Assembly (NCBI GenBank): GCA_026936335.1
Contig: JAPMXV010000051.1
Coordinates: 310,001-374,000 of the forward strand
Reading direction: 5' to 3'
Length of the DNA: 64,000 nt
DNA from: Mantamonas sphyraenae STR306
Lineage: Eukaryota > Protista > CRuMs
Shown here: piece by piece, positions 48,216 to 57,600 of the stretch
Numbering within the stretch: position 1 is the stretch's first letter
Layout of the letters: each line of letters opens with the position of its first letter
Program-made: the position numbers and the translations under genes
Notes under the pieces: generated by a model
Told to the model about the DNA's origin: nothing
Databases searched by the model: none
Seen by the model: the letters and a program-made list of their open reading frames with translations, nothing else

Positions 48216-49232
48216 TTATTGTGATTGTCGCTCGTCGTCATCGCTCACGCGGTCGTCACAGCGCTCCTTATCGTCGCTGTCATTGCCAGTGGTGACCTCT
48301 CCGCCCAAGGCCTCCAGGTCCAGGAGCACGGGGTGATGATCACTTGGCGGTTGCGAGTCGCCCACGAGCTGCCTGTAGCCGACCACTCGCTTGCATTGTT
48401 TGATGCGCCAGCTGTCCTCCCAGTCGCCACCAAGCCAGAAGTAGTCGATTCGTGGGCCATAGTGGTCGTTTGCGTGGCAGGAGGTCGCGACTCGCACTTC
48501 GTGTTCAGAGTCTGCTTCACCAGGGGGGGGCTTGCCCTCCAGCTCTCGCATGCGACGCCATGCATCAGTGTATCCAATTTCTGCAAACCAATCTGTGACC
48601 TGATGTTCGCAGGCCTCCCACCGATTCTGTGTGCGTCTGCTTTGGTAGCGTTCCCACCTAAAGTCCGTGTAGTCGTCCCGCGTCAACGAATTGTAGTCAC
48701 CTGCCAGCACGTGAGGCTGTGACGGGTCATCCATGAACGATTGTTGGCCAGCAAAGAGGGCTTTGGCCTGGCTGAGGCGCAGGGTTTCGCGGACGTGATC
48801 GAGATGGGTGACTGTGACACAGAAGCGACTGCCTTCCTCTCGTGTGACCTTGGAGGTGTCGAAGCAAGCCATGGTTGCGGCTCGCGTGCTGCCTTTGCCT
48901 CCCTGGTAGAGGACGTTGTCCTCGATGTCCTTGGCCAGGGGCAGTTTGTACAGAATGGCGTTTCCCAGCCATGAGCCCAGGGGACACTCGTGAAACTCCA
49001 TGTCCAGGTGTGCCGCAAGGCCTTCGATGGCGGTGACCTTGCTTTCACTGTCGTCCTTGCTCCACGGGAAAGCTGGGACGGTTTCGTTGAGGACGATGAC
49101 GTCTGCGTTGAGTTTCTCCAGCAAGGCAGCCACGCGCTGGACGTTGACCTCCACAAACTGGTCTCTCCACATGTGGACGTTGTAGGTGACGATGCGCACA
49201 AAGGAGCGCGGATCCTCGTCGGTTGTGGACAT
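48216..49232 (-). CDS. Endonuclease/exonuclease/phosphatase (DNase I-like) family protein
   Basis: RIVTYNVH, DVIVLNE, GNAIL, THLDH, LAGDYNS, RIDYFW, SDHHPV. Confidence 0.88.
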   Translation of the reverse strand: MSTTDEDPRSFVRIVTYNVHMWRDQFVEVNVQRVAALLEKLNADVIVLNETVPAFPWSKDDSESKVTAIEGLAAHLDMEFHECPLGSWLGNAILYKLPLAKDIEDNVLYQGGKGSTRAATMACFDTSKVTREEGSRFCVTVTHLDHVRETLRLSQAKALFAGQQSFMDDPSQPHVLAGDYNSLTRDDYTDFRWERYQSRRTQNRWEACEHQVTDWFAEIGYTDAWRRMRELEGKPPPGEADSEHEVRVATSCHANDHYGPRIDYFWLGGDWEDSWRIKQCKRVVGYRQLVGDSQPPSDHHPVLLDLEALGGEVTTGNDSDDKERCDDRVSDDDERQSQ

Positions 49233-49290
49233 TTGGGAGGTGGATGGAACTGCGCTGCGCCGGCCGGGGCAACAACCGAAACTCCCACAG

Positions 49291-50009
49291 ATGCTGCAGG
49301 AGTCATCCACACCGAGTGAGGACGATCTAGTAGTGAGCACAAGTGGCGGAGGAGGCGGAGGAGGTGACAGCAGCTCAGCGGACGACCGATACGTGGTCAA
49401 ACCGCTGGAAAGCAGCCAGCCGCCGCGCACCCGCGAAGCAAACTGGACGGGCGGGTCGAGTTCAGGAGGGAATGGAGGCGGTGGCGACTCTATGCCCATG
49501 ATCGACATGATCCCCACGCCAGTGAATGTGCCCGACGACATTGCGGAAAAGTGGAAGGACGAGCCGGACCCGATCAAGAAGAAGGTGAGTGTCGAGGGTT
49601 GTCGGGGAGCACAAAATGGCGGGCGACGACGTTCCCACGGCCTGGTGATCGTTGGAGACGTTTCCACAGGACGCGCTTGCTCACCCGCCCCACGGAGGGC
49701 CCAACCTCGCAGCTGATGATTGCCAAGGAGGTCCAGGAGCGCGAAGCGAACCATCCGTTGACTGCGTACGAGTTTGCAACCTGGCTGGGCTATTCTGCGT
49801 TGGACTGGGCGGACTATCTGGGCGGGCTGGTGGCCCACACAATTGGGCTGACGGAATCCAAGTATCAGGACGAGCTCAACGAGTACAACCGGCAACAGCG
49901 CGAGATCAGGCGGCGCGAACGGGAGAAGCGGGATGCAGAAGAGGCAAAGGCCACACAGGACGCACAGGTCATGGAGGGGGAATTGGAGGAGCACGAGGAA
50001 GAGCAGTGA
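49291..50009 (+). CDS. FAM177-like protein
   Basis: WADYLGGLVAHTIGLTESKYQDELNEY resembles the FAM177 core; intron 49585-49712. Confidence 0.6.
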
Positions 50010-50130
50010 AGGAGTGAAGGAAAAGAAAACAAAATGAAGCACGTGGTTTGTACAGCGGCAAGGGCATGGCACATCGGTCGACGATGTGCGCGCGGGAGGC
50101 CAAAACGCAACCGGGGCAGGGCACGGCGCG

Positions 50131-52784
50131 ATGGGACAGTCTCCGTCGGCGCAACTGATTGAAGCCAGCTTTGATGGGAAGCTAAAGAAGGTGAAGCAAA
50201 AGGTGGAGCGGAAACATGTGCATGTAGATAGCAGGAACGGGGAGAAGCAGACGCCGTTGATGGCGGCGGCGCTGGCCGGGCAGGAAGACGTGGTGCGCTA
50301 TCTGCTGGAAATGGGAGCAAACGTACGTGCAAAGGACGTGCGCAAGCAGACGGCGTTGCACAAGGCGGCACTGAACGGGTACAAGGCGTGTGCGGATGTT
50401 CTCCTAGCGGCAGGGGCCGACATTTCCGGGGACATTCAGGGGAACACACCGCTGCACTTGAGCGCGGTGTCGGGCCATCCGATGATTCTGTGGACGCTGT
50501 TGTCGAATCTGGTGGATGTGACATCTGTGAACAAGGAGGGAAACACGCCGCTGCATCTGGCTGCGGACAATTCGTCGTCCGAGTGCGTAGCGCTGTTGAT
50601 CATTCACGAGCCGGAGCTTCTGTCGATTGCAAACCGTGCAGGAATGACGGCTGAGGATGTGGCGCGGGATGGAGGCCATTCGGAGTGCACCAAGCTGCTG
50701 CAGCTCTCGCAGAATCTGAACGTGCAGCAGACGCAGCTTCGGGAGTCGGACATCCGGCAAGTGTTGTCGTTGTTGGGCTCCGCCAAGTTTTTTGTACAGT
50801 GGTGGGCGGCGCATGTGCTGGCACAGCTGGTGGGGAATGGTAGGTTGTGTGTTGTGCGGTGGCTTTTTCCGTGACGGCCGCGTCGTTACATTTTTTTTCG
50901 TGGTCGGTGGGAAACGGAACGGAAGAGCAGGCAGGGTGAGAGAGGCGGAGCAGCGCACGGAATGGGGGTGGTCTGACACACACGGGGCGTGGCTACACAG
51001 CGTCTGTGTGTGAAATCATCGGGGAGGAAGTGTTGATCGCTGTGGATGCGTTTCTGCGCTCTGGTCAGCCGCAGTTGATCGGGGAAAGCGTGCACCTGCT
51101 CACCGGGCTCGTGAACAGCCTAGGCGGGCCGAGCATGGTACGGGAACGCGTGGATCTGCATCTGCTTCTCATGGTGTATCTCCGGGAACAGCGACCAAAG
51201 ATCAAGGTAAGTTGTGGGATGGTGTCGGGAGCAGTGTGGGATGGTCGTCACACTGCGGCTGGGCAGGGGGCTAATACGGGCAAGCGCACACGGGCACGTC
51301 GACACAGGACAAAATCAAGGGCATCTTTCGTGGGCTGGGCACATCCGAGGGAGAAATCGCAGTGGAGATTGTGCGTGCGCCGCAAGCGGTGCTGAAAGTG
51401 GGGCGGAACGGGAAACCACACGATCGAGAGTTTCGGCTGAACGAAGGGCTGACGCACATTGTGTGGACCAGCGAAAAGCTGACCAAGTCGTCGTCGGACA
51501 CAATGGTGCAGCTGGATCAGGTGAAGGAGGTGCTGGTAGGCCAAAAGTCCCTGCTGTTTGGCAAGAAGCAAAAGAATCTGCCGGCAGGCTCGGAGCAGCA
51601 GTCGTTCTCGCTTGTATATGGGAAAAAGAGGACGCTGGACCTTGTGTGTCATAATGTGGACCAGTTTGACCTGTGGATGACTGCACTGAACTATGCCATC
51701 CCGCTTGCGAAGCGGCAGGCGTCGATGTGGCTGACGGCAGAGTCGCGCAAGTACATGGAAGACATCAAGGCGACGCAGGCGCAGCTGCAGGAGCGCATCG
51801 AACGACTGGAAGAGCAGCTGCAGGCGGAGTTGGAGACTGGCAGGCGGCTGGTGGAGCAGCAGCGTACGGGCAACGGCAAGTTGGGTGCAGAGCATCCGGT
51901 GCAGGTCAAGGTGGTGGCCAGCAGGATCCGCAAACTGCGTCTGGAAATCCAGCGTGCTGCGACGATGAAGTGGAATCTGGAGACGATCAGCATGCAGATT
52001 GAGAGCGCGTCTGTGAGTCGGACGGTGTTGGAGTCCCAACGCGTGGGAGCCGAGGCTCTGAAGAGTATTCTGGATGCGACGCCTGCCGAGGTGGAGGATA
52101 TGGTGGAAGAGATCCGGAAACAAGTGTTGGACTCTCAGGACATTGAGGAACTGATGAGCACGCCGTGGGGGGGAGGAGGAGAGGAGGAGGATGATGATTT
52201 GGATGCATTGGAAGAGGAGCTGGCGGCGTTGATGGGGGAGATCGCAGGAAAGAAGGAGGAGGAGGATGAGGATGAGGATGAAGAAGATGGGGCAGATGTT
52301 TTGGTCGAAGACGGTGAGAGTGACTCGATGGACGACGAGGGTGCTGGGGTCGGGAGCAGCAGCAGCACGGCGGCGGCGGCGGCGGCGGGCAGCAGGGTTG
52401 CAGGCAGAGCTGGTGAAAGATACAGTGGAGCAGGACGTGCAGCAGATTCTGGTGTTGAGCGAAGAGGAGGAAAGTGAGGAGCGGATGGGGCAGGATGGGC
52501 AGCAGGATGTGTTGAGGAGAGCGAGTGTTCGCGGAAGCGTGAGAGGAGCCGGGGTCGGGACCGCCGGGGTTGTGGTCGTGCTTGCAGAGGAGGAGGGAGA
52601 GGGAGCGGCGGCGGGGGCGGCGGGGGCGGCGATGGAGGAAGAGGAGGAGGAGGAGGACGTGGTGCAGGTGGAGCGAGTGGAATTGCGACGCTTGTCAATG
52701 CCGAGCAAAGCGGTGCCGCCGCGGCCTACGGGCAAGACGAGCAGCAAGAGGCGGAAGCACAGGAGGACTCTGGTGGCCGGGTGA
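50131..52784 (+). CDS. Ankyrin-repeat + PH + coiled-coil + Snf7 (ESCRT-III) domain fusion protein
   Basis: Exons 50131-50839, 51001-51206, 51308-end join in phase. TPLM/TALH/TPLH ankyrins; LKVGRNGKPH..FRL..IVW..SFSLVY..RTLDLVC..FDLW PH; NLETISMQIESA..VLE..GAEALK..VEDMVEEI..DIEELMSTP..LEEELAAL Snf7. Tail needs a frame repair at ~52388. Confidence 0.8.
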
Positions 52785-52861: not shown

Positions 52862-54616
52862 ATGGCTGGAGGAGACGAAAAGACACCGCTGGTGGCGTCG
52901 GGGAAGAACCATCCGTACTACACGGATCCGCAGACGAAGCTATCTCTGTATGCAATGTATCTGATCAACTTTCTGAACTCGTTTGCCTTCTCGATTGTGA
53001 TCCCGTCGGTGTGGCCCTTTTTGAAGCAGGTGAGTGCGCGGACTGGCCCTCTTTGCGTTTCGGGGCGCCGGGAGGGCTCAAGGAGGCGGTTGTGGAGCTA
53101 ACAAGGACGCCCCCACGTGTGGCGGTGTACAGATGGGAGCGGCAAAGGACCTTTTGGGATGGGTGGTGGCATCGTTCAGCGTGGGGCAATTCATTTCTGC
53201 CCCGCTGATGGGGGGCTGGGCGGACAAGCGAACCACAAAGGAGGTGATGGTTGTGGCCATGGTTGTGAGCGTGATGGGCAACACGATGTACTCGCTGGCA
53301 GGCACACCAGCTGTGCTGATCATTGCGCGTTTCATTACGGGCTGTGGGAGCTCGACGATGGCGGTGATTCGGGCGTACGTGTCGTACGTAACGCCGACGG
53401 AGGAGCGCACGGTGGTGATGAACTACATCAGCATGGCCAACGCGGTGGGGTTCATCTGTGGGCCTGCGTTTGGAGCCATGCTTGCCTTGCTGCCGAACTT
53501 TGAGGTGCTGGGCGTCCACGTGGACGAGGTGACCTGGCCCGGATTCTTTTCAGCCGCGTTTGGCATCCTGAACCTGGGTGTGCTGCTGCCCTTCTTTGTG
53601 GAACCGACACGTGCGCGCCTGGACCTTGGCGGGGGATCAGTGAACGGGGGCGAGGATGTTGTAGTGGGCGTGAGCGTAGACGGGGAGGAAGAGGAGGAGG
53701 AAGAGGAGGAGGAGTGGGACGAAGAGGACGGAGTGCGTCCGCCCAAGTATGGGGCTGCGGCTGCGGGAGGCCCCGCACGTGGGCCGAGGGAGCGGGAAAT
53801 GTCGCATGCGGGCCAGGACGAGGTGGTGGAGGACGGGTTTGATTCGATGCTGCTGGGCAACGTGCGTCCGCCGTCGCGTGTGGGCATCGCCCTGATGGTC
53901 CTGGTGAACTTTTCGCGAACGGTGGTGTTTACGATTCTGGAGACGGTGATGACGCCGTACACGGAGGATGCGTACAACTGGACGGTGCCGGAGAACGGGT
54001 TTATGTTTGCCGGGCTGGGTGTGTTGTCTCTGATTTCGTTCTTTGTGCTGGCCATGGTGCACCGGCACTTTTCGGACCGGCTGCTTATGGTGGTGACGAT
54101 GGCCATGATCAGCGTGGGCACAGGAATTGCGTGCACGTATCCTGCAGAAACGCTGCCGCTGTGGCGGTACGGACTCGCGTGCGTGCTCATCACGCTTGGG
54201 TACTCGCCAAACACGAGCCTGGCGCTGTCGATGCTGAGCAAGATCCTGGGTCCGTTCAATCAGGGCCTGGTGATGGGCTACTACAGCAGCGGCGGATCGC
54301 TGGCGCGCATGTCTGGGCCGCTGGGAGCAGGGTATGCGTTGCAGTACGGCGACGCAAACGCGATCTTTGTGACGGCGACGTGTGTGCTGAGCGTGACGAC
54401 ACTGCTGCTGTTTGCGTCTACGGAAAGCTGCGTGCCCATCCGCTGGTGGAGGCCGAGGAACAACAGCGCAAGCTGTTGGCCAAGGGGGAGGAGGAAAAGA
54501 ATGTGCGAAGACTGTCGTTTGGCAGCACAGGCGCAGGTGCAGGTGGTGCTGGTAGGTCAAGGACAGAGAGTGTGGGAAGTGTGGGCAGTGTGGCGAGCGA
54601 GACAGGGTTGTGGTGA
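52862..54616 (+). CDS. MFS transporter, MFSD8/CLN7-like
   Basis: FSIVIPSVWPFL, GWVVASFSVGQF.SAP.MGGWAD, ARFITGCG, GFICGP, SKILGP.NQG.VMG, GSLARMSGP; EKTPLV dileucine-like sorting signal; intron 53030-53132; frame break ~54419. Confidence 0.88.
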
Positions 54617-54693
54617 CGGGAATGAATCGGCGAGCGGTTCGCAAACAACGGCAACATACATACATATGTACTCTGACGTGTACTCTACCCATC

Positions 54694-57600
54694 CTACTTT
54701 CGTGTGACACCGCCAAATCGGCTCCAGGCTGGGTGGAGAGCTCGCCCCTGCTCTTCTTGCCTGAGTCTGGCTTCGCGCACTGCCTTGCGCCCGGTCACTT
54801 CCTGCTTGCCTGCAGAGAGGCTGCGTTTGGATGGTTTCTTGTGTTTGGGACGCTTCTTGGAAGGGCGAACGGCTTTGTGTTGGGTCCAGGCAAAAGTGTG
54901 GTCCCGCGTCGGCGAGAGCAAGGATGCGGTGGTGGTTGCCTGCTGGTTGTTGCTGCTGAAAGACGACGAGGATGATGAAGACGACGATGTGCCACTGCTT
55001 GTGGTGTTGCGACCCTGCATCACCAGAGGCAGCCCCAGCTTCTCGTCGCGGTGCATCTCGAGGTACTCCAGAGCCATGTCCATCTTCTGCAGCGAGTGAA
55101 AGAGACGTCGCTTGTGCAGACGCTCCTCTGCGAGCTGCCGTGTAACCTGTTGAAGCTGCTGTTCCATCTCCTGTGCGGTCTCGAGGGCCGCTGCAAGCTC
55201 GTGGTTGCGATACACCGCGCTGGTGAGGCTTTCGATGTCCAGATCCGCCTCGACGGCGTCCATGACGACGCTGACTGTCTTTACGGTGTGCAGTTCGTCC
55301 TGAGCGTTGCCCAGTCCCGTGCGTACTGGAGGTGGAGGGTCTTTGCCGCTTGCAGCCCGTTTTGCCTCGCGCTTCTCCTTGCGTGCTGCCTCTGCAATCT
55401 CGCCCGTGCCAAACGCAGCCTCCATGTCCGCCTGTTTGTCTTCTTGCAGCATCTTGAGCATGGCTCCCACCTGCTTTTTCAGTTTGCGTGCGCGCGGTTC
55501 GACAAACTGGGATGTGTTCATCTTGCGCCGTTCGAGATCGATGCGCATCATCTGCTTCTGCTGCTCCAGCATACGGTACAATTCGCCGATGTGATCCAGT
55601 CGCTCAGGGTTACCCTGCCGCGTGACTCGCAGCTGGCGCACAAAGTAGTCCTCCTCAGCCTGCTTCGCCGCACGTTTCTTGCGTCGTGCCACCACCTGCT
55701 CCTTGCTCAGCTTCTTCTTGCCTGGCGCTTTTTTGCCCTTTGTGTGCTTGGAACGGCGGTGTTGGCGGCGGCGGCGGCGTCGAGCGGACCGACGACGAGG
55801 ATGATGACGATGACGACGACGAGATCGAGCCGGACGATGACTCGGAGGATGGCGAACTCACGGACGACTCCGACGTGTCCGACTCATCCAACTCGCTGGA
55901 TTCAGACAAAGACGACGCGTCGCTGGACTCGTCCGCCCAAGCCTTGCGTCGTTGTGGCCGCTTGCCCCGCGTAGGTTTGCGTTTGGACGAGGCCTTTCGT
56001 TTGCGAGAGCGTTTGGCCCTCTCGTCCTCGGATTCATCTTCGGATTCATCTTCGGATTCATCGTCGGATTCAGACTCTGATTCCGACTCTGTGTCGGATT
56101 CGTTGCCATCGTCGTCGTCGTCATCCTCTTGGCTGGCAGACTCTGCGTCAGAAGCGGCTGCGTCGTCACGGTTGTCGCTGCTTTCGGCGTCGCCGACGCG
56201 GACGGAGAACGGGGAGCCTTTGAGGTGAGTTTTGCCGAGGGTGATGGAGACTTGCAGGATGCCCGGTTGGTCGGGAGCGGTGTAGGAGTAGGTGAGCAGT
56301 CCCTTTTCCTCATTGTCCACATTGACCTGGTCGGACAGATCCTCGATGGGATCACCATTGAAGGTGGTTTCCACCAGAAGGGTGTCGTCTTGCAACTCCT
56401 GCATCTCCTGAGGCGTCAACAGGTCGCCAAAGTCACTGGCGTCCATGTCTGCACGTCCGTTGCCATACTTGTCCTGCAACTGGAGGGCAAAGCGTGTGGT
56501 TTCGCCCGGTTCGACGGCACGCAGGCCTGCGCCCCATGCCGGCACGTGGTTGGATCCTTGACCCCTCCAAAGACTTGCATGGAGGAACGACCCACCTCGA
56601 CGCCGTCCATGGTGACGACAATGTCGTAGTAGCCAGCGAGCTGCGGTGTAAACACAGCTCGGTATCTTCCCTTGGTTGCGTTTTCCACGCTGGTGTCCAC
56701 TTCCTTGTTGTCGCGTGAGTGGATCACACTCACCGCCACGTCGGCTGACTCGTTGCCCTGGCTGTGCACAATGTCAAATGTGCTCTTGCGCCCAGCCACG
56801 CAGTACTCAAATCCATCGCCAGAGATGTCCACATCGTCTGCAGAGATGGTCCCCTGTGCATCCGCCTTTGCCTTGGCCTCTTTCTCCTCCTCTTGTTTCT
56901 TCTTTGCCGCCTCTGCTTCTTCCTCCTCTTGTTTCTTCTTGGCCGCGGCGGCGGCGGCGGCGGCCTCCTCTTCCTCCTTCTTTTTCTTGGCGGCCTCTGC
57001 TTCTTCCTCCTCTTGCTTCTTCTTGGCAGCGGCGGCTTCCTCCTCCTCCTTCTTCTTGCGCTCCTCCTCCTCTTGCCTCTTCTTCTCTTCGGCCTTTTCG
57101 GCAAAGCGGGACTTTTTCGGTTCGGGCTTGGGAAGGACGCCAATGAGCTTTGCATTGCCCGTGGCATTGGCGTGATCGAGGGCAGTTTTGCCGGACGCAT
57201 CCTTGGTGGTGAGGGCATCTGCACCGGCCTGGACGAGAAGGTAGGCGACGTCGACCAGGCCACACTGGCAAGCAAGCATGAGTGGGGTCATGCCGTCATC
57301 GCGATGGACCAGGTTGACGTTTGCGTGACCCGTTTGTACAAGCACGTTGACACACTGCGCAAGCGAGGCGTGGTCATCCGCGCTGAGGTTGGCCGCGTTG
57401 GCGTCCATGCAGACATAGTGAAGGGCGGCATACCCGTTGTCATCGAGCAGGTCTGCCTGGGCGCCATTGGCCAGCAGCCAATTCATGTACTCTGCGTTGC
57501 GTTGGCCGGCGGCAAGGTGCAAGGCTGTCATGGAGGAGGCGCCGGCCAGGTTGACGTTGGCCTTGCTGCTGATGAGGTAGCCGACGCTTTCGTTTTGGCG

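Follow-up and report, generated by a model that had tools for sequence, protein, structure and literature searches.

A Mantamonas gene predicted to join ankyrin repeats and a PH domain to an ESCRT-III core

Introduction

Can the choice of a membrane site be built into a membrane-remodelling filament subunit itself? The question is raised by a gene of the protist Mantamonas sphyraenae STR306, which lies on the + strand, from position 50131 to about 52784, in the stretch of DNA analysed here, 64,000 nucleotides (nt) of contig JAPMXV010000051.1 (forward-strand positions 310,001 to 374,000; hereafter the window). [quoted passage not shown] Mantamonas belongs to the CRuMs, a group close to the base of Amorphea whose cell biology has hardly been explored.

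A first-pass annotation, made from the letters of the window, had read the gene as a myristoylated ankyrin-PH-Snf7 fusion of undescribed architecture and had suggested that it might start ESCRT-III assembly by itself. Three questions follow: whether the fusion is one gene, whether its Snf7 part is ESCRT-III, and what such a protein could do.

Results

That the fusion is one gene is indicated mainly by a second species. The ATG at 50131 opens the ankyrin-PH-Snf7 reading frame (MGQSPS...), and the only orthologous cluster consists of three Trinity isoforms of one gene of Mantamonas plastica (EukProt EP00003, TRINITY_DN5756_c0_g1). One of these, P0151 (532 amino acids, aa), reads in a single open reading frame (ORF) from MGQSAS through ankyrin repeats, linker and PH domain into Snf7 helices alpha1 and alpha2. 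Exon 1 is 52% identical to its residues 1-237 and exon 3 is 58% identical to its residues 295-532. Because this single transcript ORF spans MGQSAS to Snf7 alpha2, we take the fusion to be real, to be transcribed as one unit and to be conserved, and we consider it very probable, from these sequences, that the ankyrin-PH-Snf7 architecture proposed in the first-pass annotation is a real one.

The other two isoforms, P0001 and P0152, end with 'SLVYDSRE' and a stop inside the PH domain, and in none of the three are the ankyrin and PH parts split from each other. The isoform ends are probably retained introns; if the short isoforms are real, they would be truncated forms without the ESCRT-III core. 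A search for contigs encoding P0001 has none on record.

The gene model at the M. sphyraenae locus (Table 1) bears on the same point. The PH domain and the whole Snf7 core share one uninterrupted exon, as the earlier annotation had stated in arguing that their junction is no splicing artefact. Without splicing, the frame of exon 1 ends at a stop, 50872-50874, that lies 35 nt past the donor, and removing intron 1 restores colinearity with the M. plastica ORF. Exon 3 has its first in-frame ATG within the PH domain. Scored for codon usage, with the long ORFs of the window as training set, exons 1-3 are strongly and equally positive in the chosen frame, and introns 1 and 2 are about zero or negative. 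A two-gene reading, with an ankyrin gene beside a PH-Snf7 gene, is rejected in view of the exon 1 stop, the position of the exon 3 ATG and the M. plastica ORFs.

In RNA, the locus is represented by a 251-nt aquatic metatranscriptome contig, 100% identical, that covers 51909-52159. M. sphyraenae or a near-identical strain thus occurs in an environmental sample.

As to the second question, the Snf7 part scores 63.4 bits with the Pfam family Snf7 (PF03357; cut-off 27.3, E 2.8e-17) over model positions 8-158 of 171, at nt 51749-52258, and a genome-wide scan with the same profile scores the gene at 65.3 bits. Against a hidden Markov model (HMM) of seven CHMP4-like proteins the core reaches 85.2 bits, with 1000 global shuffles at 7.5 or below, 1000 local shuffles at 9.7 or below and the reversed sequence at -1.1. 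Since 2000 shuffles reach at most 9.7 bits, the match is specific to the order of residues and is not compositional. Judged by sequence, what follows the PH domain is a genuine ESCRT-III core. Its best matches in the Protein Data Bank (PDB) and in our protein libraries are Snf7/CHMP4-like, at about 25% identity, and yeast Snf7 is its only PDB sequence match (E 2.3e-5). A word-based search with the core alone gave one weak match only, because the core is too divergent to share 5-mers with its relatives. A generic coiled coil was also considered for this region and is ruled out by the Pfam score together with the shuffle control.

Structure prediction agrees with this placement. AlphaFold, run on the core with a 12-row alignment, predicts the five-helix ESCRT-III layout, with alpha2 and alpha3 as one long helix and a predicted local distance difference test (pLDDT) score above 90 in the alpha1-alpha2 hairpin that the first-pass annotation had singled out for such a check. 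The first 24 Foldseek rows come nearly all from the ESCRT-III superfamily (Vipp1, CHMP2A/3, Asgard ESCRT-IIIB, CHMP1B, Shrub and Snf7), with weak E-values; against the Snf7 core 5fd9 the target-normalised TM-score is 0.82, with a root-mean-square deviation of 2.5 A over 129 columns. A look-alike search of the ESM Atlas with the exon 3 product returned no usable match.

The alpha2/alpha3 helix holds a 14-residue block, QRAATMKWNLETIS, that is identical in M. plastica; its alpha2 face is basic, with six K/R in VQVKVVASRIRKLRLEIQR, and the helix as a whole has a net charge of +3. Helices alpha4 and alpha5 align with alpha4 and alpha5 of yeast Snf7 and, like the tail behind them, are strongly acidic, as in autoinhibited ESCRT-III. 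In yeast Snf7, hydrophobic polymer contacts are made by T83, M87, Q90, I94, A97, L99, L101, T103, M104, M107, M114, I117 and L121, and electrostatic ones by R25, H29 and K36 with E95, E102 and E109 (PMC4720517). Aligned to this map, the fusion core is compatible at 10 of the 13 hydrophobic positions, and four of the seven membrane-binding lysines (K64, K71, K79 and K115) are K or R. Just ahead of alpha1 stands 'SMWLTAE', which is similar to the MWxxLFG with which canonical Snf7 proteins begin, and it is tempting to speculate that a trace of the original ESCRT-III N-terminus survives here.

The domains ahead of the core were also recovered, and ankyrin, PH and Snf7 profiles all score above their Pfam cut-offs. 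The PH domain matches PH_12 (PF16457) at nt 51431-51694 (32.8 bits; cut-off 27), and its sole significant PDB match is the PH domain of PLC-delta-1 (1MAI, E 3.5e-4); a model of the orthologue predicts seven strands and a helix, with pLDDT of 50-69 only. The two PH domains have a common framework, ...LKV...R.F.L...W.S.K...G..T..F...FS+V+...TLDL...., and of the residues of PLC-delta-1 that we take to contact Ins(1,4,5)P3 or PI(4,5)P2 (K30, K32, W36, R40, R56 and K57) about half are retained: in the 1MAI alignment K30 and R40 are kept and R56 becomes K, while K32 is replaced by G (with R next to it), W36 by K and K57 by L.

At the N-terminus, MGQSPSA (50131-50151) fits the N-myristoylation pattern M-G-{EDRKHPFYW}-x-x-[STAGCN]-{P}, as the earlier annotation had seen, and the M. 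plastica start, MGQSASL, fits it as well. Exon 1 matches Ank_2 (E 3.3e-34) and, in four stretches, Ank (E 2.1e-27); the orthologue model predicts five ankyrin helix pairs behind an N-terminal cap, in agreement with the roughly five repeats first counted. The helical segment noted between ankyrin repeats and PH domain stands in part. This linker, formed by the end of exon 1, exon 2 and the start of exon 3, is predicted to be helical and looks ARM-like by eye (FFVQWWAAHVLAQLVGN...); it matches no Pfam family, and the confidence of its predicted fold is low.

How unusual is the combination? All searches were run on single exons or on the natural M. plastica ORF. A HMMER search of 1.84e9 representatives with the PH+Snf7 exon listed, outside M. 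plastica, no match with both domains: about 140 of the best 150 matches are PH domains of the PH_12 type in varied contexts, such as phosphoinositide-specific phospholipase C (PI-PLC) and RhoGEF-RCC1-FYVE proteins, and the matches that extend past the PH domain consist of PH plus unrelated sequence. The same exon, run against a word index of 5.8e9 clusters, brought up the M. plastica cluster only. With P0151 as query, the same clusters gave a result swamped by ankyrin-repeat proteins, in which its own cluster was the sole orthologue. Full-text literature searches found no description of a Snf7 fusion with ankyrin repeats or a PH domain, nor of any Mantamonas ESCRT fusion; the Mantamonas genome paper surveyed ESCRTs as presence or absence only (PMC10492846). 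The claim that the architecture was previously undescribed therefore holds across two large protein searches and the literature, and the fusion appears, as far as these data go, to be recent and restricted to the genus, with at least two Mantamonas species carrying it.

The genome also encodes the canonical machinery. A six-frame PF03357 scan of the assembly (25,061,354 bases in 78 contigs) found eight genes including the fusion gene. By eye, against human sequences, we take the others to be CHMP2-like (contig C7), CHMP5-like (C36), CHMP3-like (C45), CHMP6-like with an LPDVPS motif (G000:C43, L002), CHMP1-like in two copies (C4 and C3) and CHMP4-like (G000:C3, L007). A PDB search confirms the CHMP1 assignment only, as the CHMP4-, CHMP5- and CHMP6-like genes all match Snf7/Shrub. 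Vps4 (88 bits), one Vps25 gene (PF05871 scan, one locus) and three Bro1-domain genes are present, so that recycling and upstream machinery is encoded. No CHMP7 was detected, a result that rests on weak proxies (all PF03357 matches assigned, one VPS25-like locus). Since CHMP1-6-like genes, Vps4, Vps25 and Bro1 are all present, the fusion gene is best seen as an extra paralogue, an addition to an intact pathway and not a replacement.

In a small tree, CHMP1/2/3-like rows split from the fusion gene, the CHMP4/5/6-like genes and CHMP4-like library matches with support of 84/96. The fusion gene thus appears to belong to the Vps20/32/60 half of the ESCRT-III family, where it sits on a long branch. 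The phylogeny called for by the first-pass annotation delivers this half and not the place within it, as the tree has no resolution inside the CHMP4/5/6 group; nor is the fusion gene taken to be the CHMP4 orthologue of the genome, which has a separate CHMP4-like gene at G000:C3. In that CHMP4-like gene (L007:922-1689:-, G000:C3:256058-259246) the introns stay open in frame, and a CA repeat within one of them translates as THTHTHT.

PH domains of the same type were seen elsewhere in the genome. A 555-aa frame (L014:1435-3099:-, G000:C42:172236-175502) combines ARM-like repeats with a long linker, acidic and rich in Ser, and has at its C-terminus a PH_12 domain (E 1e-9) that is 35% identical to the PH domain of the fusion gene; this ARM-PH_12 gene may be a relative of the fusion's linker+PH module. 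A further gene (L013:1495-2946:-, G000:C58:315039-318398) combines five IQ calmodulin-binding motifs (E 1.6e-26) with a C-terminal PH_12-type domain. It would seem, from these matches, that one PH type has been reused across several Mantamonas architectures.

Discussion

Our analysis points to an extra, conserved and apparently Mantamonas-specific ESCRT-III paralogue, whose function can be proposed from its domains. Among known proteins it comes closest to Snf7/Vps32/CHMP4, with which the core has in common a full Pfam domain, the order alpha1 to alpha5, a basic alpha2 and acidic alpha4 and alpha5. Unlike those small single-domain subunits of about 200-250 aa, the core begins only after about 450 residues of a protein whose length is 694 or 769 aa, behind ankyrin repeats, linker and PH domain, and lacks a free N-terminal amphipathic helix as insertion motif; the tip of its hairpin also carries an insert of 10 residues. 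With Vps20/CHMP6 it has in common the half of the family and a glycine in a myristoylation pattern, which in CHMP6 stands directly before alpha1 and here about 450 residues upstream of it.

The nearest precedent in principle is CHMP7, a VPS25-SNF7 fusion that is often missing from genomes (PMC8394649). Both proteins place a large targeting domain ahead of a C-terminal Snf7-type core, with VPS25-like tandem winged helices in CHMP7 and ankyrin repeats, linker and PH domain in Mantamonas; the CHMP7 fusion predates the last eukaryotic common ancestor, whereas the Mantamonas fusion would be recent, and the target membrane likely differs. Snf7 is likewise reported to be joined to an unrelated domain, HMG-CoA lyase, in a fusion that occurs in oomycetes, diatoms and brown algae (stramenopiles) (PMC3155505). 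There the partner is a metabolic enzyme in another lineage, whereas the Mantamonas partner is a module for binding membrane and protein.

We tentatively propose, from the domains and their order, a mechanism in which the protein would seed ESCRT-III at a membrane of its own choice. Myristate and PH domain would keep it at a membrane rich in phosphoinositides, most probably the plasma membrane; this targeting is suggested because the myristoylation pattern occurs in both species, the PH domain has the IP3-binding one of PLC-delta-1 as its nearest solved relative and four of the seven membrane-binding lysine positions of Snf7 are K or R in alpha2. The ankyrin and helical part might bind a protein partner that marks the site, whereupon the Snf7 core would open and polymerise, or co-polymerise with a canonical CHMP4-like subunit, and ESCRT-III remodelling could thereby be seeded or tuned at the marked site before Vps4 finally recycled the protein. 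We give this mechanism slightly less than an even chance; the explanation as a whole, in which the firmer architecture is blended with it, we regard as reasonably likely.

The stronger proposal of the first-pass annotation, a self-targeting nucleator that bypasses ESCRT-I/II, is plausible only by the logic of the domains. As Vps25, CHMP6/Vps20-like, CHMP4-like, Bro1 and Vps4 genes are all retained, nothing in this genome needs bypassing. In its fullest form, as a second independent fusion of a targeting domain with an ESCRT-III core after CHMP7, reaching a phosphoinositide-rich membrane unaided and seeding filaments there without ESCRT-I/II or Bro1 adaptors, the idea is unlikely to be right, and it would, if true, reveal a natural minimal scission starter, lipid-anchored and PH-guided, in a single chain.

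Several observations weigh against the reading of this protein as a conserved ESCRT-III seed. On the side of the transcripts, P0151 ends at ...QRAATMKWNLETISIVS ('NLETISIVS'), within alpha2, and the full Snf7 core of the second species is thus not covered, and the RNA of the M. sphyraenae locus amounts to the single 251-nt contig, in which no splice junctions are seen. Unrelated coiled-coil hairpins tie with ESCRT-III chains in VIA-align (Z about 11), so the fold alone is non-diagnostic and the identification of the core rests on its sequence, with which the fold is consistent. Helix alpha1 is acidic, with a net charge of -2, unlike that of canonical subunits. At the polymer interface the hydrophobic contacts L101, M107 and L121 are replaced by R, Q and T, and electrostatic contacts are kept at two of six positions, K36 (as R) and E95 (as E), in an alpha1 alignment that is uncertain. 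For membrane targeting, myristoylation of Gly2 is indicated by the pattern only, and the residues through which PLC-delta-1 would hold its ligand appear only half kept. Lastly, neither a clear MIM1 or MIM2 (MIT-interacting motif 1 or 2, for binding the MIT domain of Vps4) by eye nor a Bro1-binding motif or helix like that of Snf7/CHMP4 was recognised in either candidate C-terminus (694 or 769 aa).

Some of these points would fit a regulator better than a seed, and this is a serious rival, even if we think it rather unlikely. Here a core that does not polymerise would cap, sequester or tether CHMP4 filaments or Vps4 at a site set by the ankyrin and PH parts, in a manner comparable to the accessory subunits CHMP5/Vps60 or IST1. 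Such a role would account for an interface that is only partly kept and for the acidic alpha1; pair by pair, the core scores weakly with each of the CHMP5-, CHMP4- and CHMP6-like genes of the same genome, and best with the CHMP5-like one, and a full canonical set is already there to be regulated. Against it stand the hydrophobic alpha2/alpha3 face, which is mostly kept, the alpha2 block that is 100% conserved between two species, and a predicted model with the extended alpha2/alpha3 helix of open, polymer-competent Snf7.

It is improbable that the gene is this lineage's own CHMP7 after an exchange of the N-terminus, a nuclear-envelope or endoplasmic reticulum (ER) adaptor in which ankyrin-PH replaced the VPS25-like domain. 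CHMP7 is the one known ESCRT-III protein with a large N-terminal targeting domain and is often missing (PMC8394649), and in this genome, where the Snf7 matches are all accounted for and one VPS25-like locus was found, none was detected. That absence, however, rests on weak proxies; the best matches of the core among 1.84e9 proteins are short and CHMP4/Snf7-like, none with CHMP7-like length or match positions (no direct comparison with CHMP7 was made), and myristate with a PLC-delta-type PH domain would point to the plasma membrane or endosomes and not to the ER.

Very improbable is a gene-model artefact, with adjacent ankyrin and PH-Snf7 genes read as one or a Snf7 part that is a decaying remnant: the lack of junction-spanning M. 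sphyraenae RNA and the early ends of all three isoforms would allow it, whereas the M. plastica ORFs, unbroken from ankyrin into PH and in P0151 onward into Snf7, the exon 1 stop, the exon 3 ATG, the even codon usage and a conserved Snf7 region with an open frame that turns up in an RNA library all speak against it.

If the membrane-seeding reading is true, a filament subunit can contain its own means of choosing a site, and the fusion would offer a compact natural construct with which to define the minimal needs of ESCRT-III assembly on a chosen membrane. The genome paper noted many Mantamonas-specific inventions (PMC10492846), to which this fusion adds one. Its reach is limited to one genus so far, and that genus comes without an experimental system.

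Gene structure and neighbourhood

The coordinates of the locus, which lies in a window of about 59-60% guanine plus cytosine, are collected in Table 1.

Table 1. Exons, introns and domains of the ankyrin-PH-Snf7 gene, in window coordinates.
Feature	Position	Strand	Basis
Exon 1: start codon, MGQSPSA, five ankyrin repeats, linker start	50131..50839	+	Pfam, orthologue alignment
Intron 1, 161 nt, GTAGGT...ACACAG	50840..51000	+	no coding signal
Exon 2: helical ARM-like linker (predicted), 69 residues including the codon split by intron 1	51001..51206	+	coding signal in frame
Intron 2, 101 nt, GTAAGT...ACACAG	51207..51307	+	acceptor set by orthologue alignment
Exon 3: linker end, PH, whole Snf7 core, acidic stretch; one open frame	51308..52313	+	stop-free translation
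PH domain, PLC-delta-1 / PH_12 type (LKVGRNGKPHDREFRL...)	51386..51700	+	Pfam, PDB match
Snf7 helix alpha1 (predicted), 8 K/R, 10 D/E	51737..51868	+	AlphaFold helix 8-51
Snf7 helices alpha2/alpha3, one long predicted helix	51890..52078	+	AlphaFold helix 59-121
Snf7 helix alpha4 (predicted, acidic)	52088..52159	+	AlphaFold helix 125-148
Snf7 helix alpha5 (predicted, acidic)	52190..52252	+	AlphaFold helix 159-179
Poly-acidic stretch, 14 D/E in 20 residues	52253..52313	+	residue count
Putative intron 3, 82 nt, GTGAGA...GCAGCAG, or frame-change site	52314..52395	+	splice motifs, codon-usage switch
Putative exon 4: low-complexity acidic/Gly-Ala tail ending ...VELRRLSMPSKAVPPRPTGKTSSKRRKHRRTLVAG	52396..52784	+	frame 0 coding score

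Exon 1 ends in phase 1, at the donor GTAGGT. Exon 2 corresponds to P0151 residues of about 238-308 (69 versus 71 residues, about 28% identity) and is colinear by eye, a judgement made by eye because MAFFT misplaced this short, divergent row. The acceptor of exon 3 was fixed through the alignment of KIK/DKIKGIFRGLG with NIK/ERAKFILRKLG of P0001 and P0151 (the slash marks the exon boundary), or, at greater length, of ...KIK/DKIKGIFRGLGTSEGE in M. sphyraenae with ...NIK/ERAKFILRKLGKHEGS in M. plastica; this corrects the start of exon 3 to 51308.

The same annotation had proposed three in-phase exons ending at 52784. Exons 1-3 are indeed open in frame, but on their own they stop at 52475-52477 and yield a protein of 694 aa, and reaching 52784 takes a fourth exon or a change of frame. 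Between about 52335 and 52400 the codon-usage score shifts out of frame 2 into frame 0, which is positive from 52380 to about 52700. Splicing out 52314-52395 would give a protein of 769 aa with its stop at 52782-52784; a one-base error in the GCG/CAG repeats near 52314-52395 would switch the frame equally. The product of putative exon 4 has no Pfam match and lies past the end of the available orthologue sequence.

Downstream on the same strand, an MFS-transporter-like gene, named by eye, occupies 52862-54707 of the window, and its ATG at 52862 lies 78 nt past the stop at 52782-52784 of the four-exon model. The two genes would then be very closely spaced, unless the ESCRT gene stops sooner, at 52477. 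Upstream, on the opposite strand (48216-50072), lies a gene that by eye resembles the endonuclease/exonuclease/phosphatase family and has a long low-complexity N-terminal region; its listed ORF start, 59 nt from the ATG at 50131, is probably not the true start.

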